Source of the DNA: Hyaloraphidium curvatum SAG 235-1 | Lineage: Eukaryota > Fungi > Monoblepharomycota | Assembly: GCA_025558095.1 (NCBI GenBank) | Contig: JAIVFI010000030.1 | Span: forward strand, 310,001-374,000 | Direction: 5' to 3' | DNA length: 64,000 nt | The notes under the pieces: model-generated | Told to the model about the DNA's origin: nothing | What the model saw: the letters and a program-made list of their open reading frames with translations, nothing else | Databases searched by the model: none | Shown here: positions 39,838 to 61,816 of the stretch, in pieces | How the letters are laid out: each line of letters begins with the position of its first letter | How positions within the stretch are numbered: position 1 is the stretch's first letter | Made by a program: the position numbers and the translations under genes

Positions 39838-41445
39838 TCATGGCTCGTAGTACGCCCCGCAGACATTGTCGGGCGTCACATAGACGCCCAACCCCCTCAG
39901 GATGCCAAACAGGCCCACCCCAAGTGTGAGCACCGTCGCGGCCACTGTCCGCACGACTCCGGTGTCCACCGTGACCCCAGCAAAGGTCGCCCTGAGCCTC
40001 GCCGCGCCGTCCAGGGCGGACCCAAGCACGCGCTCCTGGTCCAGCATCGCGTCTCGGAGGGTCGGCGACCGCGAGCCGAGACGAAGGAGGAGCACTCTGA
40101 TGCGGGCGCGAGCACCGAGGTGCAAGGATGCGATCGAATTCACGTGCGCATTCGCGCGGGCGACTTGGATGAGATCGATCAGGGAGAGGACGAGCCAGCC
40201 TAGGATCCCGATGAGCAGGTTGAGGGGGATGCACGAGCTGCCGGCGACGAACATGACTGCGCCGATGACCTCGAAAGAGAGGGCGATGAGGGTGGTGCTG
40301 CGGATCACAGAATAGGATGCAAATAGCTGTCGGAACACCGGGGCGAGGGTGCGGAGCAGGACAAGGTGGAGAGCGTCTTCGGGGTCCTTTCTTGGATCGG
40401 CGGCGTCGGCCTCGGCGTCCGGAAGTCCCGAGACGGCGCGGTTCACCGCCTGTGCGAAGCCGTCCACTAGCCCGGCGAGGGCGACGGCAAAAGAGCGGTG
40501 CTGCAGCCGCGCTTCGATCGACATGACCGCGAGGTTCTTCGTTGTCACCCGGCTCGAAAAAGGTGTCAGGAAATTGAATGTGAACCCGACAAAAAGGAAC
40601 AAGGCCGCGAGCGTCGCGCTCCACGCTTGGTGCCACGTGTATCCGGCCAGCGTCACCAACGCAGTGTAATACGGGAAGACAACGTAGGCGGGGATAGTGA
40701 AGAGAAGGAAAACGGCCGTCAGGAGTGGCCACAGCGCGGCTGCACGGGAGAGCTCGCGGCCAAGGCACGAGGTCAGGGTGCACGGGCAGAGCGGGTCGAG
40801 GGGCGAGTGAGAGATCAGATAGGATGTCTGACCGCATTCGGCTGCTAAGCGCAGCCACCGGGCGGTCTGGGCGAGGTCAGCGCCGTCCAGGCTGGCCGCC
40901 GAGACGCCAGCGGATCCCACGTCGACCGTATCCCTCCCCGGCTTACTTCTCTTTCCCTCAACGTCATCGTCCGCGTCGCCCAGGGCGCTTCCCAGGTCGG
41001 CTGCCACCTGGCGCGTGTAAAAGATGCCCGTGCAGGCGGTCGAGGCAAACCATGCAAGAATGGAGAATGCACCGGCGGCGGTAGACACGGCGAGGTCGCG
41101 CGACGAGAACCTGACGGGCCCCGCGGCGGTGGCTGGGAACGGGATGGAGAGCATCGCACACTGAAACAGAAGCTTCAGGAGAAAGTGCGGCAGTGTGAGC
41201 CGGCCGTACGCCGCGGCGAACGCCAGTCGGAACGTCTCGACGCGTCGCAGCGCCTGCGACGGCCCGCTGGAGAGCAGCTCGAGCAGCCGCGCGGCCGTCA
41301 GTGGGTCGGAACGGCGCGCAGATGCCGCGGGGTCGGGCGGGGCAGGCGCATCCCACGGCGGCGGAGGCTCGGACGGGGGCTTCGCGGGCAGCAGCACGAG
41401 CCATTCGAGTTCGCTCAGAGCCACGGGAGAGACGTCGGGAGGCAT
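39838..41445 (-). CDS. 7-TM protein, gustatory-receptor-like (7TMIC) candidate, paralog 1
   Basis: Seven hydrophobic segments, CPCxxxxC loop, CIP motif, C-terminal ATFAGVTVDTGVVRTV; intronless. Confidence 0.7.
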   Translation of the reverse strand: MPPDVSPVALSELEWLVLLPAKPPSEPPPPWDAPAPPDPAASARRSDPLTAARLLELLSSGPSQALRRVETFRLAFAAAYGRLTLPHFLLKLLFQCAMLSIPFPATAAGPVRFSSRDLAVSTAAGAFSILAWFASTACTGIFYTRQVAADLGSALGDADDDVEGKRSKPGRDTVDVGSAGVSAASLDGADLAQTARWLRLAAECGQTSYLISHSPLDPLCPCTLTSCLGRELSRAAALWPLLTAVFLLFTIPAYVVFPYYTALVTLAGYTWHQAWSATLAALFLFVGFTFNFLTPFSSRVTTKNLAVMSIEARLQHRSFAVALAGLVDGFAQAVNRAVSGLPDAEADAADPRKDPEDALHLVLLRTLAPVFRQLFASYSVIRSTTLIALSFEVIGAVMFVAGSSCIPLNLLIGILGWLVLSLIDLIQVARANAHVNSIASLHLGARARIRVLLLRLGSRSPTLRDAMLDQERVLGSALDGAARLRATFAGVTVDTGVVRTVAATVLTLGVGLFGILRGLGVYVTPDNVCGAYYEP

Positions 41446-41879
41446 CCTTGAAGTTGTGCGAAGTTGGCGGGTCCCAGCGCGATCGATCATCGTCCCCAAC
41501 CGATGTCATCCAGGGGAGAGTATGTCGGTGTAGGCGCCGCTCTCTAGCTCGTGCAATGCAGAATTGAAAAAGTCGTCAGGATTCCGGATGCGATGGTTTA
41601 GGTGCCAACGTGCCCGGTACCCGGTGCAGAAGTTGGTTTCGCGGCGAGGCCAATCGCGGCGAAATGAGAGAGCTAGAAAGAATCCCGCGAGTGGAGTTGA
41701 TGCCGAAGAAAGAGGCCTGCAGGAAGTATTTGGGGCTTTTTGAGGCAAACAGAGATTTGGAGAGCCGTGCGCGCCGCTCGACCGCTCGAACTCCAATCAC
41801 ACCGTCCCTGTCTCCCGAGGTCCAGGGACCGGGCAGTCGGCCCGGAACGCGCGCGCCGCTTCTGCCTTTACCTCGGAAA

Positions 41880-43887
41880 ATGCCGGACGAAGATGTCCCG
41901 CTCGGCGGCGAACGGAAAGACGGCGACGGGCCGGCGGCACCCGAGGCCGAGAGCCCCGGGCCCCCGCCGGGCCCCGCTCCCGCAGCAACGGACACTGTCG
42001 AGGTCACGCAGCTATACTCGACGGCTCGGCTTGTCCTCGTCTTCCTGAGCCTGTGCTGCTGTATGCTCCTGGTCGCCCTGGACGTCACCATAGTTGCAAC
42101 TGCGATTCCTACTATCGTTTCACAATTGCAAGGCGCCGAGCTTTATGGTTGGCGGACCTCGCGAACGACGGAGCTCGTCTGACATCGCATTCCACCCGTT
42201 CTCGCCCCGAATCGCGCTTCCAACGTGCCAGCCTGGGTCCAAATCGCCTACGCGCTCACCTCAACGGCGGTTCAACCCATCTACGGCAAGGCCTCGGACA
42301 TCTTCGGCCGCAAATCCACCCTCATCTTCGCCACCTCCATCTTCCTCCTGGGCTCCGCGCTGGCTGGGGCATCGACCAGTATGATCATGCTGGTCATTTC
42401 GCGGGCCGTGCAGGGGCTGGGCGGCGGTGGCACGCAAGCCCTCATCTTCATCATAGTCTCGGAGATCGTGGCCCCGAGGCAGAGGGGCAAATACCAGGGG
42501 ATGCTGGGCGCCGTCTGGGGTCTGGCTAGCGTGCTGGGACCGCTCATCGGAGGGCTCTTCACCGAGTATGTCGGCTGGCGGTAGGTCCTCATCCACGGCG
42601 TTTCGACTCCCCCTCACGATCTCCAACAGCTGGGCATTCTTCATAAATTTGCCCATCGGCGCGGTCGCCGTCATCGCCTGCATCTTCCTGCTGCGCGTGC
42701 CCAAGCGCGAGGTCCCGTGGCAGGAGTCGCTCGCTAAGATCGACATCGTCGGGATAGTGACGCTTCTTGTCGCGACCATTCTCACCTGCCTGGCGCTCGA
42801 GTGGGGCGGGAGGACGTACCCGTGGAACAGCCCCATTGTGCTGTCGTGCCTCATTGTCGGAATCATTTTCTGTGGGTCGGTTCCGGCGCCGGTTGAGGAA
42901 TGCGCTCACCGCGCGGCGCGCAGTTCCGATCTTTGCCCTCGTCGAGATCAAGGTCGCCAAGGATCCCATCATCCCCATGCAGCTCTTTAGCAGCCGCAAC
43001 TACGTGGGCGCGGTGATCGCGGCCTTTTTCCACGGCGGCGTGCTTTTCTCCCTCAGTTTCTACCTCCCCCTTTGGGTAAGTGGACCAGCTGATGTGCGCA
43101 ACTCTTCTGACCGCTCCGCAGTTCCAAGTCGTTCGCGGCCAGTCCGCCACCCTCGCCGGCGTCCTCACTATACCTTTCATGATCAGTGTTGTCTGCCTTT
43201 CGATCAGTTCGGGCCTTTTCATGTCCAAGACAGGCATCTACGTGCCCATAGCGCAGGGCGGCGCTGTTCTTATGACAATCGGCCTCCCCCTGATCGCCAT
43301 CTGGACGCTCTCGAGCCCGACGTACCAGGAGGTCCTCACGCAGATCCTGACGGGGATTGGAGTCGGCGCCCTGCTGCAGACCCTCATCCTGACGGTGCAG
43401 GTCAACGCGCCCATGAGGCTCATCGGGCCGGGGACCGCATCGGTCATCTTCTTGCGCACGCTGGGGGGCGTCTTTGGCATCGCCGTCTTCGCGACCTGCG
43501 TCAACCAGGTCGTGGCGGACAAGCTGGTGGCGGCGGGGTTGCCCCCCAACATCAACCTCAACGGTGTGCAGAACCTGCCGCCGGAGCAGAAGCAGGCGGT
43601 GCAGCAGGTGGGCCCTTTCTCGCCGGGTGCGAAAGCGAGTTGCTGATCGGACCACACCTCCCCAGGCCTACGTCGAGGGACTGCGCCTCGCGTACTTCGT
43701 GCTGACGGCGTTCGGCGGCTGTGCGATGCTCGCGACGTTCCTGATCCGCCACGTGCCTTTGAGCAACATGATGCAGACCAAGCGGGGCAACGTGGACGAC
43801 AAGACGGCCGCGAACGCGGCGGCGGCCGCGGAGATGGGCGAAAAGGCGGACGGGGACGCCAAGATGCCGATGGTTGCGATGGAATGA
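41880..43887 (+). CDS. MFS transporter, DHA2/MDR 14-TM family (5 introns)
   Basis: LVALDVTIVATAIP, YGKASDIFGRK, RAVQGLGGGG, GPLIGG, WAFFINLPIG. Confidence 0.92.
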
Positions 43888-44079
43888 GTGTCTTGATTCG
43901 TTGATTGATTCCAAAAGGAGAGATACTCCAGAAATGATTGACTGATTGGGTGAATGGTGAATGGTTTCTCAGTTGCTGTGCAGGCTCCGCCACCTCACCT
44001 TGCGGCAAGCGAACACAAAGGACCGCCAGCGCGCCGCGGCCATCACTCGAAAACAACCACTGCTATCACCGCTGCTGCC

Positions 44080-44454
44080 ATGTCCCGCAAAACCATCGTG
44101 ACCCTCCGCATCCTCGAGGACCCCACGGGCGTCGGCTACCCGTCTCTCAAGGAACTCGGCATCCTCCGCGTGCACGTGGGGACCACCGTCCGCGCCCTCC
44201 GGGTGCTCATCGCAGACGCCATCGAGACCGGGGCCATCAAGAGGCCTCAAAGCACCCGCTACGGCTTGTGTGACCCGCGCACCGAGACGTCGATGTTCGT
44301 CTCCGGGTTGGACATCCACAAGGGCGGCGACGAGGGGAGGACGCTGCGCCAGGCCGGGATGAAGCCGGGCGGGAGGTACAAGCTTCAGTGGACGCCGTCG
44401 CGCGAGGCGGTTTTCAGCGCAGGTCGCTGCTGCAGGAGGGCTGGGAAGGACTGA
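44080..44454 (+). CDS. Small hypothetical protein, possible ubiquitin-like fold
   Basis: TTVRALRVLI and RTLRQAGMKPG resemble UBL patterns (TV..LK..I; TL...G). Confidence 0.45.
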   Translation: MSRKTIVTLRILEDPTGVGYPSLKELGILRVHVGTTVRALRVLIADAIETGAIKRPQSTRYGLCDPRTETSMFVSGLDIHKGGDEGRTLRQAGMKPGGRYKLQWTPSREAVFSAGRCCRRAGKD

Positions 44455-44683
44455 ATGTTCTGTCGGAGCTTGCGGGGAGGACTTGCCGCGAACGGCGGGG
44501 AGAACTGAGTCGTAGAAACTCGCACCACTGTAGATCTTGCTCATTTCAAGCATCTTCGTCTTAAGCTTGTCCCGTCCTGTCCTGTCCAGAGCGAGCCGAG
44601 CCCGCCGAGAGCTGAGCGCAAGGTGGAGTAGGGACGCGGGTCCCAGCGATCCGTTTCCGACCTTCACGTACCCCCCCAAGAAG

Positions 44684-46251
44684 ATGGAGAACATGGCACC
44701 CTCGTCGTCGCCCGACTCGTACGAGGCGCAGCGGGCGCGGAGGATCGCCGAGAACTCGCGGATCCTGCAGAGTCTGCAGCTGGAGCCGCTGGCCGCACCG
44801 CCGCCGGCCGCGCCCGCCAAGCGGCCCGCGCCGGCGAAGAAGCGCCGCGCCGAGGAGCCGCCCGCCGAGCCCGAGCCGCGGCGCGTGTCGCTGCGCAAGC
44901 TGAAGCTCGACCCCGACGGGAGCGAGGCAAAGGCCGTCGCCGAGCGCGAGGAGGCGAAAAGGCTTGAGGAGCTCGAGAAGATGCGGCGCGTGCCGGGAAA
45001 AATCGAGCTCAAGGACTTTTACCTGCCAGAGGAGGACGCCGAGGCGGAGCTGGGCGCCCTGAGCGCGCTGCTGGGCGCCGCGTCGGTCGACGGCGAAACG
45101 CAGGCCCCGAAGGCCCCGGCCCACGCGCCGAAGCTGGTCATGCGCGACGGCAACCGCCAGCGCGCCACCAAGGACCGCATCTACTCCATGGCCATGCACC
45201 CTTACACGGCCGAGAACCGCGTCCTGGCCGTCGCCGGCGACAAGCAGGGCGAGGTCGCGCTGGCGTGGTGCCCGCTGGACCCCGAGCCGCAGGCCGAGGA
45301 CGGCACGGGAGGGCGGCTGCAGCAGATCTGGACCTTCAAGCTGCACAAGCGGCCCGTGACAAACCTCGAGATCGCGCCGGGGAGGCCGCAGAGCGTCTAC
45401 ACGTCCTCGTACGAGGGCTCGATCCGGCGCACGGAGCTGGCCACGCTCGCCTCGGACGAGCTCTACGGCAACGACGGCGAGCTCATCACCACCTTTTCCA
45501 CCTCGCCGTCGGGTGACCTGGTCTACTACGGCACGACCGAGGGCACCGTATCGCTGATTGACCTGCGGGCCGACAACAAGCCCGTCACCGAGTACGCCCC
45601 GCTCTTTGCCCGCAAGATCTGCGGCATGCAGCTGCACCCGACCGAGCCGCACTACCTCGCCGCCGGCTCGCTCACCCGCACGTTTTCCGTGTTCGACGTC
45701 CGAAAGCTGCCCTCCTCCCGCTCCTCCAAGGAGCCCGAAGCGGTCTTCGAGTTCACCCACGGATATGCTGTGTCTTCCTGCTATTGGAGCCCGGACGGGA
45801 CGCGCATGGCGAGCACCAGCTTCGACGACACCGTCGGGCTGTTCGAGTGGAAGTCGTCGACGATGAAGAAGATCACCCAAATCAAGGTGGGTCCGGCGGG
45901 CGCAGCGTCTCCAGCTCCACAAACCTTCTCCTTGCTCCGCAGCACGACAACCAGACCGGCCGCTGGGTCACCAACTTCAAGGCGCGCTTCCTCTCCCCCT
46001 CTTCGCACCTCTGCGTGGGCGGGATGAAGCAGACCCTAGACATGTACTCGGCTGCGGACGGCGCAACGGTGGGGAGCTTCCGATCGGAGGACGTCACGGC
46101 GATCCCGGCGGTCGTCGCGCCGAGCCCGAGCCTGGCTTACGGTGAGTGACTTTCATTGCCGCGCTGGAAAGGAGCGGGGCTGATTGGCATGCTAGTGGTG
46201 GCGACGGGGAACGCGAGCGGGAGGATCGAGATATGGAGCGAGGCGGCGTGA
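44684..46251 (+). CDS. CMR1: WD40 DNA damage-binding protein CMR1/WDR76 (2 introns)
   Basis: YEAQRARRIAENSRILQSL, RIYSMAMHP, AGDKQG, HDNQTGRWVT, GNASGRI. Confidence 0.88.
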
Positions 46252-46464
46252 AGGCGAACGACAGCCTGGGCCGGTCGTGGGAAGCGAAGGAAGAGGAAGA
46301 GCTGGTGGTTGTCATTGGGCCTGTACACCGCATCGACGGATCCGCGATCCTGAACACCTCCAACGCCGTCTGCTTTTGTCGAAAGAAAGTCCGAGTCCCA
46401 TATGGTCCGAGACCGCGGCGGAGCCAGGTCCGCTCCGTCATAAACCCCGCCCCGCGAGCCTGCC

Positions 46465-46824
46465 TCACTTGGCCGACTGGTTCTGGTTGATGTACTCGAG
46501 CGCGAGGATCATCGCCGTCGGGATGGCGATCATGGCCGCGCCGCCCTTGAGGTCGAACTTGTCCCTCAGCCCCACGACGACGAGTAGCTCGCCGATGTAG
46601 CTCAGCTGCGCCGCGCGGCGGGCCTCGGCCGAGCCGATGGCCAGCGCGGCGAAGCCGCGGATCAGGCCGTGCGCGGGGAAGCCGGCGTTGATGGCGCGGA
46701 CGCCCTCGGCCGAGAGGGAGGGGAAGCTGTCCTGCACGGCCTGGCCGGCGCCGGTGTAGGCGAGGGCAAAGTCGAGGAGGGCGTTGAGCGCGAGGGCGTA
46801 CTTGGTCACGGTGACGGCGGTCAT
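46465..46824 (-). CDS. Small multi-pass membrane hypothetical protein
   Basis: 119 aa, strong GC3 bias, about four hydrophobic stretches, HGLIR...SY..E pattern. Confidence 0.6.
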   Translation of the reverse strand: MTAVTVTKYALALNALLDFALAYTGAGQAVQDSFPSLSAEGVRAINAGFPAHGLIRGFAALAIGSAEARRAAQLSYIGELLVVVGLRDKFDLKGGAAMIAIPTAMILALEYINQNQSAK

Positions 46825-47205
46825 TGTGTCTGCGGAGGCAGGTGGAGGCCCGGTGAGCGACCGCCCTCCGTGCGTCACCGCCAGCCGGCGGTGCGCCGCG
46901 GATCGAAGCCGGAACAACGTACGGACCTTTCGGGTCGCGAAGGGAGGGACGGAAAGGATGCGGGGGACAGTCGATTTGCCGCCGGGCCGATCGCGGAGCC
47001 GGCCACACGCCTTTGGCGGCCCGTTCTCAGGGTCCATGCTAGACACGCTGCCGAGGGAGCCGAACTCATGCGAAAGAGCAAAAGAAAGATGGATTGAAAG
47101 GTGGCAGGGACATTGACACTTCGACCAAGGACCTCTATTGTCGTCCAGAGTGAGGCCTCTTTTCCTTCCGCCGGGATCGGCGACCAGACCTCTAGTGTTC
47201 GTCAT

Positions 47206-47910
47206 CTAGGCCTGCTTTCCGTCCCCAGGTTGATCGGAGCCGGCAGGATTGGTCATTCTGGGGTTCAGATTCTTGGGCTCGGTGCCGCCTGGTCGGAAGA
47301 GTAGAGTAGGATCAGCAGCGGGATGCGATCCCGGGTCGCCAGAACGCACCGTCCGCAATGGTGTCACACGCGTAGTGCCACCGCAACAGCTTCCAGACGC
47401 CGTCCCTTTTCTCGAAAATGGCGTCGCCGATAACCGGGGTGACCACATCGACCGGCGGCCTCTGCGAGTTGATGTTGAACACAATGCCCTGCTGGACCAG
47501 CCTTATCCGGTCCGCGGACTGCTCCAGGAAAGTCGTCGCGCCCTCGAAATGCCGCCTCTGCATCCGGTGCGCGCGAAAAAAATCGTGCCGGTGCCGCACG
47601 CGCTTCATGTCGGGGTCGAAAGGGCCGCCGCTGGAGAAACCGACGCGGTCTTCGCCGTCCGGAAGGAGGAACGACACTGCGGCAAGGCAAGAGGCGTCGG
47701 TGGCGTGTCCGTCGCGTCAAGCATCGCTCCGGCGTGTCTCCCGGATGACCCACTCTCCGCCTCGGGCCAGAAGCACTGATCCCGGAACGCCTCGTACGCG
47801 TTCTCGTCGACGTAGAACTTGTACGCGGAGAGCACGTTGACGCATGCCATCCTGTCCATCGCCGCCTGCGCCGCGTCGACGCCGGGGATCGCGCTGCTGC
47901 CGGCGAGCAT
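47206..47910 (-). CDS. SnoaL_4 / NTF2-like protein (2 introns)
   Basis: DR.AC.N.L.AY...VD N-terminal helix, RRH, FEKRDGVWK after splicing. Confidence 0.7.
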
Positions 47911-49140: not shown

Positions 49141-50045
49141 CTAATCCCAGCGGTAGCTGTCGCCGTCGACGCCATCCACGCAGACTCCGAACTCGATCAC
49201 GCAGACGCCGAACTTGTTCTCGCCAGCGGCACCGATTTCGGCCCGAATCCCTGAGAAAGCCTCGCCCTGGCTCTCCAGGCCCCTCGGCCGACCCCCTGTT
49301 TGGTCCGTGAAGGGGTTGAGCTTGGCGTAAGTTTCGTGGATCTGAGTTCGCGCTCGGCATCAGCTCTGGAAGAAGCGGACGCCGGCTATCCAAATCCCAC
49401 CGCGATCACGACCTCCCAAACGGTGACGAACTCTCCCTTGGCCTTGACGGTGATATGGTTCCTCCCGTTCTCCAGCACTTCGTGGTAGGTATCCCAGCAA
49501 GCTTCACAGCAGTCCGGATCGCCCGTCGTCATAGTGCGGACCATGCTGGAGACGGCTTGATCGGAGAAGCGCAGCTTCAGCTCCGTCACCGCGGGCCTCG
49601 TCGCCGGCTGGTCGCGCACCGCCGAACCGCCCAGCTGCACGAACTCGGGGAGCAGGTAGCGGTTCTCGAAGAACTTGGGCTTCCTCGTGCCCATGAACGA
49701 GACCCAGAAGGACTTGGGCTTGCCCGATTCGTCTTCGTAGTAGTCGCCCCAGTCGACCTTGCCCTTCCTCGGCCAGTAGGGCCCGCCCTGCGTGGGGTCG
49801 TTCCCAACTGCCCACGTGGGCACAAGCGCGGAGCCGACCGCGAGCGCGGGGTGGAACTCGCACGGACCGTCCGAAGAGGGTTTGAGGAAGCAACGCGCGG
49901 CGAGGGAGGCGTCGGCGTCGATGGCGGCGGCCCACGCGCGACAGACCCCGCGCGCGCGGAGCACGTCGGGCAGCAACTGAAGGTGGCGCAGAGTCTGTTG
50001 CAGAAGCTCCGGCACAAGCAGCGGGGAGGAAGCGGCGGCGGCCAT
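49141..50045 (-). CDS. F-box protein (intron 49342-49400)
   Basis: LLVPELLQQTL..L...DVLRARGVCRAW...I F-box; spliced exon 2 ends ...DSYRWD*. Confidence 0.75.
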
Positions 50046-50133
50046 GGTGGTAATGAGAGCGGTTGTCGGCGGGATGGAATCGGTGACGCGCGTCCCGTCA
50101 TCAGTCGGAGAGGACCACCTTTTCATTCGTCCT

Positions 50134-51590
50134 TTACGAGTACACAGGGCAATACGTCTCGATCGTGATGCCGACGCCCGCTCCCTTGAGCAAGGTGAAC
50201 AAGCCCACGGCGACGGAGAAGACTGTAACCACCAACGCCCTCACGAAGCCCGGGCCCACGTCGATCCCCGCTAGCCGGGCCGTGTAGGGCGCACCGTCCG
50301 CGCACAGGCGGAGCTGCACGAGGCGGGCTTTCAGGGTCGGCAGCGCGGGGTGCGCCGGGTCCGCCGAGGCCGCGAGGTCCGCGAGCTGCCGCTCGGCACG
50401 GGCAAAGAGGCGCGAGATGCCGTGCACTTGCGCGTTGCTGACAGTGAAGCTGAACAGCACTATCAGGAGATCTCCGAGGGCGAAAATCGGGTACGCGAAG
50501 TTGAGGACGGGAATGCAGGCTCCCGTGGTTGCGAAGATCACCCCAAAGACGAAAAAAGGCCAAGACCAGCAGCGTTGGGACGGCGACAAAAGCTTCCAGT
50601 GAAGACAATCGGCTCTGCCACTCCGCGGCGAGAAGGGCGTGAAGCATGGTGAAAGGCTCTTCGGCGCGGAGATCCGCACAGGTAACGGCAGCTCCAACAA
50701 AAGTCGGGTGCGGTACCGAGCAACAAGATCGCGTAGGGCGAGAATGACCGCTCGCTGGTGCAGGCGAAGAGAAAGCTCCAGTGTTTTGAATCCTGGTCGG
50801 ACGCTGAGGAAACTGATCGCGTACCAAAAGCTGTACACAGCTATGAGAGCAATGCAAACGGCGGCCAGCGCAGTGCTCCACGCAGTGGACCACGTGAGGG
50901 AAGAGAATGCTCCGAAGAGGCCTGTCCAGAGCGGCAGCAAGCCGCCGACCAAGGAAGCGCCGATAAGGTCGTAGAGCATCTCGAACACCTTTCCGGCACC
51001 CGCAGCCTGGGGAATTGCTCCCGCACAGGTCGTAGCGGGGCACGGGCATAGGTTGCTGTCCACGCTCGCGTCCGAGTTGTGAAGCAGGACTGCAGCGAGG
51101 GCTTTTCGCGGACGATCTCGGACCAGATGGCAAGTTGTGCCATGGAATGGTGCCGTGGGTGGATGGCACGCTTGATCGCAGAATCCAGAGCAGGTGATGA
51201 CGCGATGTTCGCCAACAAAACCAGAACGAAAACTGCCGTGGTAGCAGCTAGTTGAGGCGTCCCGAAAAGCGGAACTGCCGTACGAAACGCAAATCCCGTT
51301 GAGATGGCGAACGCAATCTCGCATAGGAGCATGAGAGTCACGATCAGAAGGTGACTGACAGGGCCGGAGAAGAACTGGAGTTGCACGATTCTCTTGAGCA
51401 GAGCGGTTGGAAGCGCGGCGAGGAGCCACGCGCGGGTAGGCAGACGCGCCTCGCGAAGGTCGGCGGCAGGGTCCGTGGGAAGCGGCGCCAAAGGCGAATC
51501 GTTCGGCGGCGGTTCAGGAAACAGAAGTAGCCATTCCTCCGGGGAGAACGAAAGCGGTGCCACGGGCGGAGGTGCCTCTGTCGTCTCCAT
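50134..51590 (-). pseudogene. 7-TM GR-like paralog 2 with three frameshifts (pseudogene or assembly errors)
   Basis: Homology to 39838-41445 is spread over three frames, with shifts near 51103, about 50695 and 50552; no premature stops otherwise. Confidence 0.6.
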
Positions 51591-51776
51591 GCGGGCGAGT
51601 TCGAGCCCAGCAGCTGGCAGCTCGGGAGACAAGCAACGCGGGCCAGGGCACGCTCTGGAACTGAGCAGCACTGGCAAAGCACTCCCGCTAGCAGGAATCG
51701 GAGACGGCCAGAGGACAGCTGAACACGTTTGAAGGAGGGGTTTTCCGCAGAACCTCAACCGCAACGCCGCGCCGTC

Positions 51777-52612
51777 ATGACGTCTCTCTCGCCGCGCCGG
51801 CCGCTGGAGCCGCGCGGCCAGCGTTCGTCCCTTTTTGCTCCGCCGTCGCCCGTGCGGCGGCTCGGCCTCCCGTCGTCCCCGCCGGGCCCGGCCGCCCCGC
51901 AACCCGCGCCGACGCGCCTTGCGCCGCCGCTTCCCCCGAATCTCGCGCCGCACCCGGTCGACGCCGACACCGTCGCCGCTCTCCGCGCCCTCAACGCCCG
52001 GCTGCTGCCCGTGTCGTACAACGACCGCTTCTACGCGGAGCTGCTCGGCTGCCACCCGCCAGAGCTGTCGCGCGTTGTGCTGGACGCGGCCGGGAACGCC
52101 GTCGCCGCCCTTTGCGCGAGGCTGGAATGGGATTATCCAGTGGTGCCGGGGGAGGGAAAGAGGGCGATGTTTCCGCCGCACCCGAACGCCCGACCGCGGG
52201 GGCCGCTCCGCGTGTACCTGATGACCATTGGCGTGGACCCGACGATGAGGGGAGCCGGAATCGGGACGGCATTGCTGGAAGGCATGCTGGAGCAGGCCGC
52301 TAAGTGGAAGGACGCCGGGGTGGGGAGGGTGGTCCTCCATGTTTGGACCAAGAACGAGGAGGCGGTCGGGTGGTACCTCAAGCGCGGCTTCAGCAAGGTA
52401 GGCAGCTGATTTGGAAGGGACGATGGACTGTTGCTGACATCACATTCTGCCGGTGCTACCCACAGGTCGCCCTCGAGAGCGGCTACTACTCGCGCAACCG
52501 CGGCGTGGAGCCGCCCGACGCCTGGCTTCTGGAGCACCCGCTCGGAGGCAAGCCCGCGCCCGAGTGCGGCCCGCGGGAACTCCGCACGGACGAGGACGAA
52601 GAAAGTACTTGA
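51777..52612 (+). CDS. NAA50: GNAT N-terminal acetyltransferase, NAA50-like (1 intron)
   Basis: LPVSYNDRFY, YLMTIGV, RGAGIG, LHVW..NEEA..WY..RGF, YY...DAWLL. Confidence 0.75.
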
Positions 52613-52851
52613 GCGCCTGTCGGTGCCGCTCGGCCGCTGGATGCGGCGCGAGGCTCGGGGCGCGACCCGGACTGGAAGTTCTTGGCGAGGTACCCGCTAT
52701 GTATGTCGATTCCCGATCGAGATTCCCCTGTATTGTGTTTTTGCAATGCAACGCAGTTCGATGAACAGAACGAATGATTTCACTGGGCACGACAGTTCGC
52801 GAAGAAGGCTATATACACATTCGAAGAGTACAGTAGAGAGACGCTCCGGCC

Positions 52852-53877
52852 TCAAGCGGATTCGGCCGGGCCGGCGAACTCTTTGTTGTACAGCCTCCGC
52901 ATGGTTTCGACGCCCTTGAGGTCGTCCACGTACTGCGCCAGCCTGGTGATCTTGCCCGTCGCGGGGTCGAGCATGATGCGGTACATGGTCTGCGTGACCT
53001 TGACGGGGAAGAGGCCCTCGTTGACGACCTCGGCGCGGACAACGGCAGTAAAGGGCTGCGCGGGAGAAGGTCATGGCCTTCCAATGAATCCGGCCTGCCG
53101 GGGCGACGGACCCACCTCGAGCGTGTACGGCTTCTCCAGCATCTTGACCGATTTCATCCCGCCGTCGAAGCTGGCCTTGACCAGCGCGTCGCCTTCCTTC
53201 CCCTTGCACACCTTGAACCACGGGGCGATCCAGACGGCGTCGTCGGCGAACATCTCGGACAGCCCGGCGGCGTCGTGGGCGTTGATGAGGTCGAACACCT
53301 TGTGGAGGGCCGCCTGGGCTTCTGCTTCGCCCGGGATCGGGCCGCCGATGATCCTTGTCATGACGTCCTGGATCGTCTTCACGGCCGAGGCGTCGGTGGG
53401 GTCATTCACGCCGATGCTGCGGACCGACTCGAGGGCGTCGTTGACAAAGTTGATGGAGTGCGTTCCGTACGAGGCCTGGATCGCAGAGGCGAGTCAGCTC
53501 AAACTCTTAGCAAGCATCGGCTGAGAACTCACGCGGCCGCCGGCGCCATCGTTCATGGTCAGGGTGAACTCGGAGACGACGCAGTGGATTCCCGGCGCGA
53601 CGTCCATGACGACCACGGGGCCTGCCCTGCGCTCGTACTTGAGGTCAAAGTCCTTGATGTATCTTTTCAGGACAGTGGTAATCTCTTCCTTGCCCGCCAT
53701 GATGCCTGGAGGGGCGTGGGAGTCAGAGCTTCTCCAGAATCGTGCACCGGGCAACGCACCCAGCGAGCCGACCATGCTGCAGCCCTGGGCGTAAGGGCCA
53801 ACGTCGGCAATGCCGGCGTTGAGGTTGTCGTAGGCGCGCCGTTCGCGCTCGATGAGCTGCTCGCGCGTGGGCGACAT
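52852..53877 (-). CDS. Tandem NTF2/SnoaL-like domain protein, copy A (intron-containing)
   Basis: MSPTREQL...; FADDAVWIAPWFKVCKGK; paralog of 54276-55321. Confidence 0.7.
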
Positions 53878-54275
53878 GCTTCTCGAGAGGCGCTCGGAGT
53901 CAGAGCCATGCGTGCGGCGGCGGGGCCGCGTGTGCGACGGAGAAGTGCTCGGGACGCACCTTGGCCGTTGCTCGAAGGTAATGAAGTGCTTTGCAGTGCT
54001 AGTGCTTCGGAGAATGTTGGTGAATGCTGTGCGAGTCACACAGACGAGATGGATGTTGATATCAGATGGAGCGCCCCGGAACATGCCGGCGGCTGGAGCA
54101 TGATTCACCCTCGACGACAGCATGCCTGGCACTGACTTTTGAGCAAAGGCCCAAAGAAATGAACGGAAAGTGGAGACGGGGTAATGATGCGATGATTGAC
54201 GGCATCTTGGCGGCACACAGCGCCAAGGAAGGACAAAATCGAACTCTACATGCAAGATTCGGTCGAGTATTCTGC

Positions 54276-55321
54276 TCAGGCCGACTCCGCCGCGTTCGCG
54301 TAGTCCTTGTTGTACTGCATCCGCATCGTCTCGACGTCCTTGAGGTCTTCCGGGTAGTTTGCCACCCTGGCGATCTTGCCGCTGGGGGGCTCGAGCGACA
54401 CCATGTAGAGGCTCTGCGTGGTCTTGACGGGGAACAGACCCTCGTTCATCCACTCGGTGCCGACGACGGCGGTGAAAGGCTGCCGAAGGGGAGTGAGGCA
54501 AGTACAGTTGTGCACGCCGGTGGAGCCCACGGTGAACGAATCGGGTTCGCCCAACATCTTGACCGACTTGAGGCCGCCTTCGAAGACGCTCTTGGCCAGC
54601 GCCATGCACGCCTCTTTGCCACGGCACACTTTGAACCAGGGCGCGATCCAAATGGCGTTGTCCGCCAGCGCGTCGGTGAACCCGGCGAGGTCCGCGGCGT
54701 TGGTCAGGTTGACGAGCTTGCTGAGGGCGGCCTTGGCTTCTGCACCTCCGCGAGGAGAACCACCGTCGATCCGCGTCCTGAGCTCCTTGATCGCGACTTT
54801 GTCTGCCGAGTTGATCGGGACGCTGACACTGCGGGTGGCCTCCAGGTTGTCGTTGAAGAAGTTGATGACGCGAACGCCGAAGGCGACCTTCGAACACAGA
54901 AGCGACAAAGAGTGCAAAGAGTTAACAGCAGTTCCGAACATGGCCTCCGCATTCAGATGTTTACCCTTCCTCCGGCACCGTTGTCGGTCGACCGCACGAA
55001 CTCGGACGCGACGGCGTGGATCCCCGGCGCGACGTCCGTGACGATGTCGGGGCCCGCTGTGCGATCGAACTTGGTGTTTCGCTTCGTAGCGCTCTCTGTC
55101 AGGACGGCAACGATCTCGTCCTTGCCGACGAAGATGCCTGGACGTAGGAGGCCGCTCGCGGAGCTGTTCCGGCGCAGACGCGGAGCTTCTCAATGCTTAC
55201 CCATCGCCGTGTGCACCAAGTGGGTGTCCTCGGCGTACGGACCATAGTCGGGGATCCCGGCGTTGAAGTTGTCGAAGCCGCCCTGCTCACGCTGAACGAT
55301 CTCGTTGCGGGTCGGGGCCAT
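54276..55321 (-). CDS. Tandem NTF2/SnoaL-like domain protein, copy B (intron-containing)
   Basis: MAPTRNEI...; LADNAIWIAPWFKVCRGK; both copies end DLK.VETMR..YNK..A..AESA. Confidence 0.7.
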
Positions 55322-55951
55322 GTTCTGCCCGAAGATACGCCACAGTCGCTCCAAGGTCTCGCAGCATGGGTGGGGACGGCTCACTTTTCGACAATGAGTA
55401 CTCTGCGGTCGGGAGATGCGTTGCGGGTTGGACAAGTGTCGTCGAATGGACGGTAGGTGAGTCAACCCGATCGATCGGGGACGCTCGCACAACCTTTCGG
55501 AAAAAGAGAGCGGGAATCAGAGATTCCCAAAGGGCGCGATGATTTACAAAAGTCACCATGTTCAGGATGGACGGATGTCGGCTTTTGTCCGAAGCCGAGC
55601 GCATGATGCTCACCCGCGACGCTCGCGTCCAAGGAGCCCAGACCCCTAGTCAGACAACTTGAGCAATGTAGGTTGCAGAGTACGAGCCATGAATCCTTCT
55701 CCGCTTCCAATCGGGAATCTGGAAGGCTTCCATCGGTCCGGGTGAACTGGCTGGACCCGGACGCCAGCGGCGGCTCTTTGCCACAAAGCTTCGCCCGCAG
55801 CACCGTCTCCCACTCCACCGCCGAGCAAGTCGGCGCTCACCGACGGCACGGGCCTGCCTTCGAAGCAAGCGCAGTCTCCACCGCGGCGCCTTCGGAGCAC
55901 TCTCCGACCGAACGTGGCCCCTGAAGTGCTCCGGACCGTTATCTCCGCACC

Positions 55952-58334
55952 ATGGCGCCCTCCGGCGATGCGACGGGCGCGGCAGCCGAGCCCATTGTGG
56001 ACTTTGACAACCTCGGCTTCGATCCAATAGCTCTCCGCCGCAAGTACGATGAAGAAAGAGACCGGCGGATCAGGCCGGACGGAAACGTTGGTTCTCGCCG
56101 ACCGCGGCCGCCCGGATCCCCTGACGTCCTTCAAGGATCAATACGTCAACATCTCGGACTTTTCCGAGTACCTGGTGGACCCGTATGTCCCCCACATCGA
56201 GCGGGAGCAGCTCCATGACGAGGTCGACGTGCTCATCGTCGGCGGCGGCTTCGGTGCCCAGCTCGCGGCGGTTCGGCTCCAGCAGGCCGGCGTGGGGGGC
56301 AAGCGGGTGCGAATCGTGGAGAAGGGCGGCGATTTTGGCGGGACGTGGTGTGGGTCCATCTTTGGCCGCTCCTTCTTGCGAGCCTGATTCGAGAACACTG
56401 TTGCAGACTGGAACCGCTACCCCGGGGCCCAGTGCGATATTGAGAGCTACATTTACCTTCCCTTGCTGGAAGAGACAGGCTACATGCCCGTTGAGAAGGT
56501 AGGCCCTCTTTCTCTCTGGTTTCTTGATCTCTGATCCTGGTTCCTGCAAAGTACACGCGCGCAGCCGAGATCCTCGCGTACTCCAGGGTGATCGCGGAGA
56601 AGTGGAACCTCTACGACCAGGCGATCCTGCAGACGGAGATCACGGGTATGAAGTGGGAAGAGGCATCGTCGCGCTGGGTGGTGACCACGAACCGGGGCGA
56701 CGAAATGCGCGCCCGCTTCGTGGCGCTGGTCTCGGGGCCGCTGCACCGGCCTAAGCTCGTTGGCGCCCCCGGGATCGAGAGGTTCAAGGGACACAGCTTC
56801 CATACCTCCCGCTGGGACTACGAGTACACGGGCGGCGGGCCGAACGGGGGCCTGGACAAGCTGAAGGACAAGCGCGTGGGCATCATCGGTGCGGCGCGAC
56901 AGCTTTCTTCCCGTGCTCCCGATTGCAGCTAAAGCTGTAAACTGCAGGCACCGGGGCCACCGCCATCCAGTGCGTCCCGCACCTCGGGGAGTCGGCCAAG
57001 CACCTCTACGTGTTCCAGCGCACGCCGTCGGCCGTGAGTGCCAGAGGCAACAAGCCAACCGACCCGGAGTGGGTCGCGTCCCTCAAGACGGGGTGGCAGG
57101 ACGAGCGCAAGACCAACTTCAACAACATCATGGCACCGAGCATGCATCCCGACGACATGGTCACTGAGGATCTCGTCCAGGACGGCTGGACTAGCATCTT
57201 CACGGTCTGTGGTCTTGCAGGCGCGGACGATACCGAAGCTGACGTTCGACGCCGCCAGATCCTCGCCCAGGCCGCCAAGACGGCCCCGTTGGACCCCGCC
57301 AAGATGGCCGAGCGCATCCAGCTCGCGGACTATATCGCCATGAACCGGATCCGCGACCGCGTTGACCTGATCGTCAAGGACAAGAAGACTGCCGAAGCGC
57401 TCAAGCCGTGGTACAACTTCTTCGTGGGTGTCTCCGACGCGATGGTATCCTGGCCTCTGATGCCCGTCCCGCGGATGGCGTCGTTGCTCCTCCCGGCAGT
57501 GCAAACGGTACGTCATGGCCTTCGTATCCCACCACGCACCCCTTCCTCACACGATTGCAGCCCGACATTCAACGACGACTACCTCCCCACCTTCAACCGC
57601 CCCAACGTCACGCTCGTCGACACCGCTGGCAAGGGCATCGAGCGCATCGAGGAGACCGGCGTGGTCGTGGACGGCAAGCTGTACGAAATCGACTGCCTCG
57701 TCTACGCGTGCGGCTTCGAGGTCGGCACGAGCTTCTCGCGGCGGTGCGGGTTCGAGATTTACGGGAGGGACGGGGTGAGCCTGACGGAGAAGTGGGCAGA
57801 CGGGTGCAGGACGCTGCACGGGTGAGTCGTTATGCGTTTTGCGGGCGTGGAGGCAGGACTGACTTTGCTCGGCCCCGTGTCGCCCAGGATGACCACCAAC
57901 GGCTTCCCCAACGCCTTCATCTTCATGCTCCAGCAGGCCGGCTTCACCGGCAACGTCCCGCACGTCCTGGACGAGCAGGCCCGGCACTTTGCCTACATCG
58001 TCAGCAAGGCGCTGGAGCAGGGCGCGAAGGAGGTCGAGTGCACCACCGAGGCCGAGGACGCGTGGGTGGAGGAGTGCGTGAACAAGGCGCAGCTGCGGAG
58101 GGAGTTCCTTCAGGCCTGTACGCCTGGATGTGGGCATTCCGCCGACTTTGCAACGCCAGTTCGGCAACTGACGATACGACAACAGATTACAACGACGAGG
58201 GAAAGCTGGGCAAGTCGGCGCTCATCGTGGCGCGCAACTCGCCATACGGGGCTGGATCGCAGGCGTTCATTCGCCTGATCAAGGAATGGCAGAAGGAGGG
58301 GAACATGAAGGGGCTGAAGGTGACTTTGGAGTAG
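55952..58334 (+). CDS. Type I Baeyer-Villiger monooxygenase (CDMO/PtlE-like), about 8 introns
   Basis: [33 protein letters not shown] fingerprint, IIGTGAT, FQRTP, CKRP, ACGF, CTPGYYN.EG. Confidence 0.92.
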
Positions 58335-58449
58335 ACCTACACGAGTTGATTTGCATTGCTTTGGATTGGATTGAGCAGACCAGGAGGTACTTATACACAG
58401 AACAAGCCGAAAGTAATACAGCGGTCTCAACCGCACTGGCGACCCTTGA

Positions 58450-60107
58450 TCACACATCCATCACATACGCAAGCGCCTCCTCCATGCCAGGCTCCGCGTC
58501 TACCACCGGGATCCCCCCAAAGTTGCACCGCAGCACCGTCCTCCTCAGCGCGTACGCGACCGCAAACATCGTCTCGGCGTCAGCAATCCCCTCGCAGCCG
58601 TAGATGTTGAGCTCTCTCAGGTTCGGGAAGGCCGCGGCGAGGGCCACGATGGATGCGTCGTCGACGGCGGAGAGCCCGGCCACGGAGAGGGAAAGAAGCG
58701 GACGGCGACTTCCGGTGAGCGCAGATATGGTTGCCGACGACACGGAGGTGAAGGAGATGTCCAGCTCGGCGAGGTTCCTCGCGGACTTGACGATGGCTTC
58801 CACGGAGGCGTCCTGCATCCGAGCGGCGGGCCCGGGTAAGCCTCTCGCAGGGAGGCGGCGAATGCCCGACCCACCGTGATTTCGGTAGCGCGCAGCCTGA
58901 CGACGCGGAGCCCCGGATTCGCTTCCGCAAGCCTAACCACCGCAGCGTCCGACACCTGCGTGAACCCCAGGTCGAGGAGCGCGAGAGAGGTCGTTTGCAG
59001 CTCCGACAGCGGACCGTCCGAGATGGACGTGTTCCTGAGATCCAGCAGCGTCATCTTCCGGGCCTTGGCGAAGGCGGAATGGAAGGCTCCGTCGCCGATC
59101 TCGCCGCAGGAATGGAGCCTCAGCCTCGTGATCGAATCGACCGAATCCACGAAACCACGGAAGTCTTCGTCCGCAAAGGCGACGATCGGCATGCCCAAGT
59201 CGGCTCCCGCCTCGCTACGAGTCCAGGGTCCCAGCAGAAGACTCTCGAGGGAGCGGGGGCAGCACGACGCGATCGCGTCGAAGGGGCTGGACATTTCGAG
59301 CACGCCGGACACCGACAGGGTCTTGAGTTTCGGGAGTCCCTCGAACACCGTGATCCAATCCAGCACATCGCAGTCCGCGTTGTGGGCGAGAAGGTGTTCG
59401 AGGCGGGGGTCGAGGCTCGTGAGGAAGTCGGTGGCGTGGAACAGGGCGCTTCCGCGGATCGAGACGGACTTGAGCTTCCGCTGGTAGCTGAGGTTGCAGG
59501 CGATGGTCGCCAGCGTATCGTCGTCCTCCAGGTCGGTGACCACAATGTCCGCGCGTCGGAGGGCGTGATTGAAAGGAACTCCCCTGCCGCACACCATCGC
59601 CGAAACCCCCTTTTCGAACAGTTTGACGCGATCCGACTCGGTGCCCGTCCGCCGCAAGTACGAGGGGGCCTTCTTCTTCGACACCTCGAGCTGCACGCAT
59701 TCCCAGATCCTCGGCGACGCGACCTCGAAAAAGAGCCAGCTGACGCGGCAAAGCTTGGCCGCGAGCTTCCTGCGCGGCAGGCACCAGCAGCCGCAGCCGA
59801 ACCGCTCGCACGCGTCGCCGCAGAACGGAGAGTCCAGGTGGGGGCACGGCGGGAGGGCAAAGCTCGCGATCATCCGCAGGATCTCGGGCGGCAGGCGCGG
59901 GCTGCCGGGGTTCCCCGCCTTCTGCCGGGTTTCGGCGTTCTCCGAAGAGGGTGTGAATGTGCCGAACACGCCCTCCGCCTCGCCGTCGGGGCCGGCGGGC
60001 CGGAGGAAGGCCTCCAGCCGGGGCTGCTGCGCCGGTGCCGTTGACGTGCCCGCGCGGCTTAAGTCGCGGCCCGGACGCGCGGCATCGGTCGACGACTGAG
60101 CAGGCAT
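58450..60107 (-). CDS. F-box/LRR protein with PIP-box-like motif and Cys-rich F-box insert (intron 58813-58874)
   Basis: RLPPEILRMIA...LCRVSWLF....RIW; LRRs such as LDLRNTSISD, LDLGFTQVSD, LDISFTSVS. Confidence 0.85.
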
Positions 60108-60196
60108 GGATTTGAGGACGTGCGAACGGCGGCGGTGCGGGGAGGGAAGGGGGGGGCGCGCGGGGCGAGAACGCGGTTTTGGTGCCACCACCCGGA

Positions 60197-61816
60197 TCAA
60201 CCGGGGCAGACGGCGTCCATGGTCACCTCGACGCCGAACCCCCTGAGCACCCCCCACACGCCGAACGCCACGGTCGCGAGGGTAATGTACAGCGTCCGTA
60301 TGGCCCCGAAGCTCACCACGAACCCCAGCACCTTTGCCCTGCTGTCCCCCACGCGCAGGTGCGACCCCAGCACGGCGTCGTGTGCGCGGACCGCGGGCGC
60401 GTGGGGGGAGAAGGGGCGCAGGGAGAGGAGCTCGCGGAGCTCGCGGCGGGATCGGGCGACGAGCTCCGCGACGGTTTGGATCTCGGCGTTGAAGGTGGCG
60501 GCGTTCCAGAGCTCCCTGCCGATGGTGGCGACGTTGTAGAGGAGGTAGAGGAGCATCCATGCCGGGATGCAGCGGCCGATGAACTGTTGGAGGGCACGGC
60601 GTCAGTGGGCGGGGAACGAAGGGAGGGTGAGGTCGACGGGTGCGAAGAGGTGCTCACCGCGCTCAACGCCGAAAGCAAAAGGAGCACTAGCATGTAAAAT
60701 GCCCAGACCTGCGCTGTCCACACGGTTCTGAAGTGCCGTTTCCATGAGGCACCCAGCAACGCGAGAAGTTCCGCGTACGCCATCGGCGCCTCGGGTACGT
60801 CCGCGCAGGCGCCCTTGTCCAGGCCTGCGGCGCACGTGTCCACGAGCTGCCCCAGTGACAATGACAGCGCCCGGAACCGCAGGCGCGAGGTGAGGCGCAT
60901 GATCGATGGGTGTGTCGTGCTCACCGCGAGCACTTCCGTGGCGATCATGACTGACGAAAGCACTGGCGGTGCAGGCGACCATCAACCGTTTCATACGGGT
61001 GGAACAAAAGGGAAGCCTACCGCCGAGGACATTGAGCACCGCCGACCACGGTTGGCTCCAAGTTGTCGGCCCTAGCGTCACCAAAGACGTCCATAGCATG
61101 GCCAGCTGCGAGACCAGGCTGTGCGAGGTCCTGTACACGAGCTCCGACGTTGCACCCCAGAGCAAGTTCCCCGGGGTGGAGCCGCCGCAGCCGAGGCGCG
61201 CACAGGGACACTGCGAGTCACCGTCTCTGTGCGCGGTCAGCGCCGCCGGCGTCCTCGCCTCCGGGCCTCCTTTCTCCGACCAGTCAAACAGCTGGGCCCA
61301 GCGCACGAGGCCCTCGCGTCCGTCCACCACCAAGGCGTCGAACGATTCCATCCCGGCGCGAAATCGATCCCCGTATGGAAACGTGGATCCGAAGCGGCGC
61401 TTCATGTTGACGACCCAGGCCAGCGTGTGCACCAGGTTGTATATCAGCTGCAGCGCGAAACCGAGGGCGATCTGCCGCGTCCCGAACGAGCCGGCGCCGA
61501 ACGGCCACGCGAGGGCGAAGCAGACGGCGAAGGCGAGCGTCATGGCCACGTAGCGCGGCGCCATCAGCGGCAGCGTCGCGCGCACCAGTGCAAACTGGAA
61601 CGCCGCGAGCCGGCGCACCGCGGGAAACGGCCTCAGCTCGGCCAGCTGCTCCGCGGGCGACTGCGGCGAGCGGACATCGCCGGCGGGGTCGGCCCACGCC
61701 ACGGCGGCCGCCGACGACGCGTCGGGCGCGGGCAGCGGCCGCGGGAAGAGCGCCGCGTACTCCGCCGGCGTGAAGAGCCCCGGCGCCGCGCGGGGCGGCG
61801 CGCGGGCATCCTCCAT
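60197..61816 (-). CDS. 7-TM GR-like candidate, paralog 3 (introns 60963-61020, 60584-60657)
   Basis: FTPAEY..LFP.P, DPA, CPCARLGC, TWSQPWS, GRCIP, C-terminal AKVLGFVVSFGAIRTL...CPG. Confidence 0.7.

Follow-up and report, generated by a model that had tools for sequence, protein, structure and literature searches.

A lineage-specific family of several hundred seven-transmembrane proteins in the fungus Hyaloraphidium curvatum with a modeled fold like that of insect chemoreceptor channels

We analyzed a 64,000-nt stretch of the Hyaloraphidium curvatum genome (contig C30:310001-374000, hereafter the window), in which a preliminary description had pointed to three divergent genes for ion channel candidates resembling gustatory (GR) and odorant (OR) receptors. 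H. curvatum is a monoblepharid 'chytrid' fungus with a genome of 31.9 Mb in 55 contigs at ~65% GC. It is a planktonic unicell without a flagellum and was formerly regarded as a colourless alga. The three loci, here called copies 1, 2, and 3, belong to an H. curvatum-specific family of ~400-450 genes; two of them are intact, and the other is transcribed despite a frameshift. The proteins very probably share the fold of the seven-transmembrane ion channel (7TMIC) superfamily. The explanation we favor, with more confidence than doubt, is that the family forms tetrameric ligand-gated chemosensory channels.

The family was defined with a profile (A1) built from an alignment of 20 paralogs from the H. 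curvatum genome. A second alignment (A2) of 111 paralogs is the basis of the conservation percentages and entropy values given below. When the six-frame translation of the window was searched with the A1 profile, matches were found solely at the three loci. The genome search scored 87-90 strong matches among 698-866 first-look candidates; these were mostly full-length and free of internal stops, and a minority carried one. Family size was estimated with a degenerate DNA pattern of 33 places encoding D-x2-C-P-C-x4-C, a motif described below, using the reversed pattern as the control. The pattern gave 257 matches in the genome compared to 4 for the control. The exact motif is carried by 74 of the 126 full-length members (59%), and the two figures together yield an estimate of ~430 loci, or approximately one per 75 kb. 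A profile search of 1.84 billion representative sequences clustered at 50% identity returned 453 matches at E ≤ 1e-3, 396 at E ≤ 1e-10, and 266 at E ≤ 1e-30, and all 10 matches sampled from ranks 1-150 were single-member H. curvatum clusters. The genomic estimate agrees with the global profile count, so that few relatives within the reach of HMMER are to be expected in other organisms. We regard it as close to certain that the family is real and that it is this large in a 32 Mb genome. The large lineage-specific repertoire that had been extrapolated from three copies is thus present, and it is lineage-specific as far as HMMER detects. A word-based protein search, with a single sequence, the alignment, and the C-terminal region as queries, returned only the two closest H. 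curvatum paralogs; low-complexity words saturated its candidates, and the result is uninformative on other taxa. The nearest proteins in the database carry names of the form 'hypothetical protein DFJ74DRAFT_... [Hyaloraphidium curvatum]'.

The motif matches are clustered in the genome. Four lie within 28 kb at C1:703987-732069 and five within 33 kb at C5:783992-816931. Further tight tandem or head-to-head clusters were seen at C12:54783-70568 and C14:39173-40937. A near-identical pair at C10:808992 and C10:813173 has the same 33-nt motif DNA on opposite strands, indicating a very recent duplication.

Hydropathy and loop lengths reveal the same architecture in copy 1 and in the family average. 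Seven hydrophobic segments, which we take as transmembrane (TM) helices TM1 to TM7, are located at residues 86-106, 120-140, 240-260, 276-296, 382-402, 409-430, and 497-518. The mean outer loops are short (TM1-2, 13 residues; TM3-4, 15; TM5-6, 6) and the mean inner loops are long (TM2-3, 91 residues; TM4-5, 80; TM6-7, 66). Lys and Arg residues are concentrated on one side of the membrane. The mean number of these residues is 8.4 in the N-terminus, 10.2 in the TM2-3 loop, 9.3 in the TM4-5 loop, and 8.4 in the TM6-7 loop, compared to 1.1, 0.2, and 0.1 in the TM1-2, TM3-4, and TM5-6 loops and 0.2 in the C-terminal tail. By the positive-inside rule, this charge distribution predicts an N-in/C-out orientation, the inverse of G protein-coupled receptors (GPCRs), and no GPCR was found among the structural matches reported below. 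A signal peptide-like hydrophobic stretch was not detected at the N-terminus, which is Pro-rich and has only a 7-residue hydrophobic patch. The seven segments, the alternation of short and long loops, and the lack of a signal peptide that had been read from the window were all borne out, and neither an N-out topology nor a different number of segments was seen.

Conservation is distributed unevenly along the protein. TM7 is the most conserved helix, with an entropy of 1.66 bits compared to 2.8-3.2 bits for TM1-6. A conserved TM7 with variable TM1-6 fits the OR/7TMIC pattern, in which the pore and anchor are conserved and the half that binds ligand varies. The putative pore-lining helix of copy 1, TM7b (residues 497-518; window 39892-39957, minus strand), contains R499, T507, and R517, which are 94%, 98%, and 88% conserved, respectively. 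The TW...WS motif (residues 270-276; 40618-40638, minus strand) is found where TM4 begins, in the predicted extracellular TM3-TM4 loop; its W271 and W275 do not vary in A1, and their conservation in A2 is 86%. The other sequence motifs proposed to be shared by the three copies were found family-wide: EW..L.P, DPA, H...D..C.C....C, SC.P in the TM5-6 turn, N432, and the helix before TM7.

The third of these motifs, H-x3-D-x2-C-x-C-x4-C, is a candidate Zn or metal site in the TM2-TM3 loop of copy 1 (residues 213-227; 40765-40809, minus strand). Conservation is 100% for H213, 95% for D217, 100% for C220, 99% for C222, and 100% for C227. The loop is rich in Lys and Arg, which places the motif in the cytosol. 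Because the cytosol is reducing, the combination of one His with three Cys is suggestive of Zn binding. The private Cys-rich cytosolic loop of the preliminary description therefore stands, with its His and three Cys 99-100% conserved. A second pair of conserved Cys lies on the predicted extracellular side. Cys405 (40231-40233, minus strand) is in the 6-residue TM5-TM6 turn and is 99% conserved, and Cys529 (39859-39861, minus strand), its possible partner, is in the C-terminal tail and is 97% conserved. In the structural model of copy 1 described below, Cys405 is part of a short strand (residues 405-407) with an accompanying C-tail strand (residues 522-524), and short strands occur at both sites in the model of a second family member as well. 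The placement of these strands in the TM5-6 turn and the C-tail makes a Cys405-Cys529 disulfide near the outer mouth of the pore plausible. The His/Cys motif, like the extracellular Cys pair, is private to the family. The N-terminal cytosolic region is also conserved and contains EW..LLP, DPA, and R..PLT. In copy 1, residues 11-20 (window 41386-41415) include E-W-L-x-L-L-P, and P20 is 99% conserved. Many members have an ExxxLL spacing reminiscent of the acidic dileucine sorting signals ([DE]xxxL[LI]) that bind adaptors, a likeness that we offer as speculation.

The fold was predicted for two family members. An AlphaFold2 model of copy 1 (ma5edc8897a83), computed from the A1 alignment, had a mean predicted local distance difference test score (pLDDT) of 86 and a predicted template modeling score (pTM) of 0.83. 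The top 17 Foldseek matches to this model in the Protein Data Bank (PDB) were all insect GRs or ORs, and the matches were weak (best E = 0.018). The listed value and extent of match were 11.0 and 318-329 of 377-381 for MhOR5, 10.6 and 330 of 375 for AaegOR10, 10.2 and 330 of 374 for Gr43a, 10.1 and 338 of 379 for BmGr9, and 9.8 and 344 of 396 for AgamOR28. A replicate model of P0134, which is ~26% identical to copy 1, was computed from the A2 alignment and reached a pLDDT of 93.8 and a pTM of 0.92. Its top 15 matches were again all ORs or GRs, with probabilities up to 1.00 and a best E of 1.6e-3. The corresponding values were 13.2 and 327 of 381 for Gr43a, 13.2 and 345 of 375 for AaegOR10, 12.1 and 300 of 319 for ApisOR5-Orco, 11.5 and 330 of 377 for MhOR5, 11.3 and 308 of 391 for BmGr9, 11.0 and 330 of 396 for AgamOR28, 10.5 and 336 of 406 for 8z9a_A, and 9.1 and 311 of 407 for Gr64a. 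The OR/GR channels are the sole full-length structural matches of both models, and any other match covers at most ~45% of the model. A structure search of the ESM Atlas returned cnidarian and arthropod clusters with TM-scores of 0.50-0.69. The AlphaFold2 weights are older than the first Orco structure, making recall of the fold from training unlikely. The structural match to Orco and the GRs that had been anticipated from the loop pattern was thus obtained with two independent models.

The models also contain the finer features of the superfamily. The structural definition of 7TMICs by Benton & Himmel 2023 (PMC9998090) includes seven N-in/C-out TM segments, intracellular loops longer than the extracellular ones, and a whole-chain match to Orco, ORs, or GRs, and all three were found here. 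Long cytosolic extensions of TM4-6 were judged from model secondary structure and hydropathy. In the copy 1 model, the helices corresponding to TM4-6 span residues 274-297 plus 305-339, 359-403, and 408-456, and the hydrophobic cores are limited to 276-296 (TM4), 382-402 (TM5), and 409-430 (TM6). The TM5 and TM6 helices are thus 45 and 49 residues long, of which ~21 each are hydrophobic, and the P0134 model has the same extensions. TM7 is split. A cytosolic helix without a hydrophobic peak (TM7a, residues 461-484) is followed by a loop and a second helix (TM7b, residues 495-518); the equivalent helices in P0134 are residues 412-425 and 442-465. That the family has the 7TMIC fold is, in our judgment, very probable.

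These features suggest how the proteins might work. The N-in/C-out subunits would assemble as tetramers through a cytosolic anchor domain consisting of TM7a and the long parts of TM4, TM5, and TM6 that project into the cytosol. The strongly conserved TM7b would line a central cation pore, and the highly variable TM1-TM6 bundle of each paralog would form its ligand pocket. The repertoire would then be a large set of ligand-gated channels that sense environmental or nutrient chemicals. The cytosolic H-x3-D-x2-C-x-C-x4-C module, probably a structural or regulatory Zn site, would modulate the channel, and the extracellular Cys pair contributed by the TM5-6 turn and the C-tail may form a disulfide at the outer mouth of the pore. 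Taken by itself, the proposal that the family forms ligand-gated channels has in our estimate an even chance of being correct.

Several observations weigh against the chemosensory channel explanation. H. curvatum is a non-flagellated planktonic cell, in which a role for ~430 chemosensory channels is hard to see. The Foldseek E-values were never below 1e-3, and the TM-scores to solved structures were 0.2-0.43. The Pfam models 7tm_6 (PF02949), 7tm_7 (PF08395), Trehalose_recp (PF06151), and DUF3537 (PF12056) gave zero matches at E ≤ 10 with 20 members, and the family profile gave zero matches to PDB sequences at E ≤ 10. Pfam scans of the three copies and 20 paralogs returned sub-threshold noise only, such as DUF2269 and GlfT2_domain3. 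The GR/GRL (gustatory receptor-like) TM7 motif (T/S)Y-hhhhh-QF, where h is a hydrophobic residue, is absent from the family, whose TM7 consensus, G..RT..VT..TV.VGLW..LRG.GV, contains neither the Y nor the QF. A four-copy tetramer prediction with residues 276-525 scored 0.00; the alignment was unused and the fold was uncertain, and although we list the prediction here, it speaks neither for nor against assembly. Finally, no non-animal 7TMIC has a known function according to PMC7746228 and PMC9998090. The sole sequence-derived pointer to known families is the protein language model neighborhood, which comprises DUF3537 (0.91-0.92), 7tm_7 and GUR clusters (0.88-0.89), and ciliate TM proteins (0.96); this neighborhood is a lead and not a test.

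Much of the same evidence would be expected if the proteins had the 7TMIC fold and shared ancestry with GR/OR/GRL/PHTF-type proteins but were not ligand-gated chemosensory channels. They could instead be constitutive or leak channels, organellar channels, channels regulated by metal or redox state through the His/Cys motif, or non-conducting receptors or scaffolds, and the expansion could reflect other selection, for instance for telling self from non-self or for resisting parasites or viruses. The fold evidence for this alternative is identical to that for chemosensory channels, and the lack of a demonstrated function for any non-animal 7TMIC is a point in its favor. The invariant cytosolic His/Cys motif suggests intracellular regulation, and the organism is non-motile. 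The long TM2-3 loop, ~91 residues in the Hyaloraphidium family, recalls the Class-B PHTF-like 7TMICs, which, according to 10.1101/2023.08.30.555482, combine stereotyped 7TMIC features with a long intracellular TM2-TM3 loop and whose function is unknown. The language model neighbors, in contrast, belong to Class A (DUF3537 and 7tm_7). The family moreover combines TM1-6 that vary with a TM7b and anchor that do not, and its repertoire is large, diverges fast, lies in tandem clusters, and includes pseudogenes; together these traits are the signature of a chemoreceptor family, and we consider a non-chemosensory 7TMIC family rather unlikely.

Resemblance to ORs and GRs could also be convergent or reflect generic helical-bundle geometry, in which case the family would be an unrelated, new, lineage-specific seven-TM class, for example of transporters or lipid-handling proteins. 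The weak E-values and the lack of Pfam and PDB sequence matches noted above leave space for such a class. However, two independent high-confidence models placed every OR/GR representative in the PDB at the top and over the full length, and other folds were matched over less than half of the model. The N-in seven-TM topology, the long TM4-6 extensions, and the split TM7 all coincide, and the embedding neighbors independently indicate DUF3537 and 7tm_7. Convergence is therefore improbable. Copy number raises one more explanation, coding sequence of selfish or repeat origin (for example, a mobile-element gene, either domesticated or still active), with which ~430 copies in 32 Mb, clustering, and occasional stops or frameshifts would be compatible. 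Yet paralogs that are only ~25-30% identical have kept open frames and invariant residues, which points to long-term purifying selection. Six-frame comparison of the three ~10-kb segments of the window gave only weak, short matches besides the genes, the flanking genes are ordinary (WD40, F-box-like, and leucine-rich repeat), and Pfam transposase domains were found neither in four unmatched flanking open reading frames (ORFs) nor in the family proteins. A mobile-element origin is very improbable.

Comparison with known systems places the chemosensory channel explanation in context. The insect ORs and GRs (Orco, MhOR5, AaegOR10, AgamOR28, BmGr9, DmGr43a, and DmGr64a) are tetrameric ligand-gated cation channels of animals, whereas the host here is a unicellular fungus. 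The fungal proteins have no detectable sequence similarity to them and are 100-150 residues longer. The extra length is found in the N-terminal cytosolic region with EW..LLP and DPA and in the 90-100-residue TM2-3 loop with the H/D/C/C/C motif, and the fungal family adds the conserved extracellular Cys pair. The GRL and DUF3537 proteins are also non-animal and were proposed as 7TMICs on the basis of topology, loop pattern, and predicted fold (PMC7746228). In that study, plants have 4-12 DUF3537 genes, and the GRL count is one in each of two Spizellomyces species and six for Thecamonas and Vitrella; the chytrid SpunGRL1 and SpalGRL1 retain only one of the four TM7 motif positions. The Hyaloraphidium family is like the chytrid GRLs in its weak or missing TM7 motif, and DUF3537 clusters are among its nearest language model neighbors. 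It differs from the GRL and DUF3537 proteins in having ~430 genes compared to 1-12, in failing to match the DUF3537 Pfam model, and in its private Cys motifs. Non-animal 7TMICs number from one to a dozen genes per genome in PMC7746228 and PMC9998090, and 7TMICs are reported from Chytridiomycota and Blastocladiomycota in 10.1101/2023.08.30.555482. A large fungal expansion is not mentioned in the searched passages of PMC9998090 or 10.1101/2023.08.30.555482, and full-text literature searches returned nothing linking Hyaloraphidium or Gonapodya to gustatory or 7TMIC receptors. We would classify the family as a new branch of the known 7TMIC fold superfamily, one that is hugely expanded and an orphan by sequence.

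The three copies in the window are distant from each other. Copies 2 and 3 are 29% and 25% identical to copy 1, the three are 25-29% identical to one another, and none is the nearest relative of another. Copy 1 (39838-41445, minus strand) is a single-exon, intact ORF of 535 residues, its stop included in the interval, and it matches the A1 profile with E = 2.6e-179. Its nearest relative is a gene on contig C17 (59% identity in the genome search; 57% by tblastn). The preliminary description had given the three loci as paralogs with seven hydrophobic segments each. The A1 profile places all three in one family, but copy 2 is not an intact frame and copy 3 is not one ORF. The frames of copy 2 and the exons of copy 3 were searched piecewise, and the database model P0084 served as a stand-in for copy 3.

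The nearest relative of copy 2 is P0134 (54% identity). The 5' part of copy 2 (51093-51590, minus strand; E = 7.6e-14) encodes, in one frame, the cytosolic N-terminal region, the first two TM segments, and the beginning of the TM2-3 loop as far as ...REKPSL, and it is 54% identical to P0134 residues 2-156. The 3' part (50134-51087, minus strand; E = 6.9e-46) is in another frame, encodes LLHNSD.., the CPC motif, TM3-TM7, and the stop, and is 54% identical to P0134 residues 163-480. The two are separated by 5 nt (51088-51092, minus strand) where P0134 has two codons (6 nt), consistent with a 1-nt loss or an equivalent change. A three-frame translation comparison showed that P0134 is colinear with copy 2 across the break (KPSLSLLRHD). 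Transcription was assessed with the transcriptome contigs of run X1, which is identified as RNA because joints of 59-162 nt, of GT..AG or CT..AC type, occur in its contigs over neighboring genes. One contig covers copy 2 from 50132 to 51739 at a depth of 129.6 and is colinear with the genome, with zero splices and zero differences. Rescue of the frame by an intron was considered, and the sole frame-restoring pair spotted by eye was GT..AG from ~51171 to 51091. This intron was rejected because it removes coding sequence for a helix that is conserved in P0134 and because the RNA contig does not use it. Copy 2 is transcribed yet frameshifted, and its simplest account is probably a very young pseudogene.

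Copy 3 (60197-61816, minus strand) has three exons that are 100% identical to P0084 over the residues that P0084 covers. Exon 1 (61021-61816; E = 3.3e-39) encodes the N-terminus to the start of TM4 and includes P0084 residues 1-174. Intron 1 (60963-61020) is a 58-nt, phase 1 GT..AG intron with the donor G|GTAGGC at 61020. Exon 2 (60658-60962; E = 1.7e-12) encodes the TM4 extension and TM5 and corresponds to P0084 residues 176-276. Intron 2 (60584-60657) is a 74-nt, phase 0 GTGAGC..AG intron, and both intron junctions match P0084. Exon 3 (60197-60583; E = 1.1e-40) encodes the CIP turn, TM6, TM7a, TM7b, and the stop and corresponds to P0084 residues 277-404.

Current gene models truncate the N-termini of family genes. 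The database model P0001 covers only residues 98-535 of copy 1, beginning at Met98, and P0084 begins at residue 92 of copy 3, an internal Met within TM1. The two models leave out a part of TM1 along with the conserved cytosolic N-terminus (window 41155-41445 and 61546-61816). In both cases the frame stays open upstream, and this ORF matches the family profile. Many family gene models may be truncated likewise, because the match list contains many proteins of 340-440 residues. The family is also invisible to Pfam. As a result of the ~65% GC content, the window has long spurious ORFs along its whole length, on both strands, that overlap with real genes.

The genes around the three copies were also inspected. 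Between copies 1 and 2 there is a WD40 beta-propeller gene (44537-46027, plus strand; PF00400, E = 3.4e-10). Directly downstream of copy 2 on the same strand, 49386-50126 (minus strand) has a sub-threshold match to the F-box-like family PF12937 (E = 1.2e-4; 22.2 bits compared to a cut-off of 24.3), and the RNA reveals an intron of this gene at 49342-49400. Downstream of copy 3, the ORF at 58617-60100 (minus strand) has a weak sub-threshold match to LRR_4 and an F-box-like 'LPPEILRMI' stretch. Run X1 has spliced CT..AC joints at 47676/47754, 48790/48953, 49341/49401, and 53055/53116 and a GT..AG joint at 52395/52464, and several expressed, intron-containing genes surround copy 2 between 47600 and 53500. 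For the gene at ~51930-53475, the contig is on the plus strand and has joints of both kinds. A segmental duplication as the source of the ~10-kb spacing was rejected on the tblastx comparison of the three segments, and the Pfam scan of the four unmatched ORFs between or beside the copies identified neither a transposase nor another Pfam family.

In the most far-reaching form of the ligand-gated channel explanation, H. curvatum would run the largest non-animal repertoire of 7TMIC ligand-gated channels (~430), expanded independently of the insect ORs and GRs as a chemosensory or environment-sensing array, with a Zn(His-Cys3) module and a disulfide that couple gating to the intracellular metal and redox state. 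We advance this form tentatively and hold it to be less probable than its negation. Approximately 430 7TMICs in one fungal genome would constitute an independent, massive radiation of the insect chemoreceptor fold. The family has what typifies a receptor repertoire: its ligand-side bundle varies, its pore helix is conserved, it forms tandem clusters, and it includes young pseudogenes. Its hundreds of natural variants in a culturable microbe are material for testing ligand gating, the stimuli that are sensed, and the working of the His/Cys module. If the chemosensory explanation is true, large ionotropic chemoreceptor repertoires of the 7TMIC fold would not be an animal invention.

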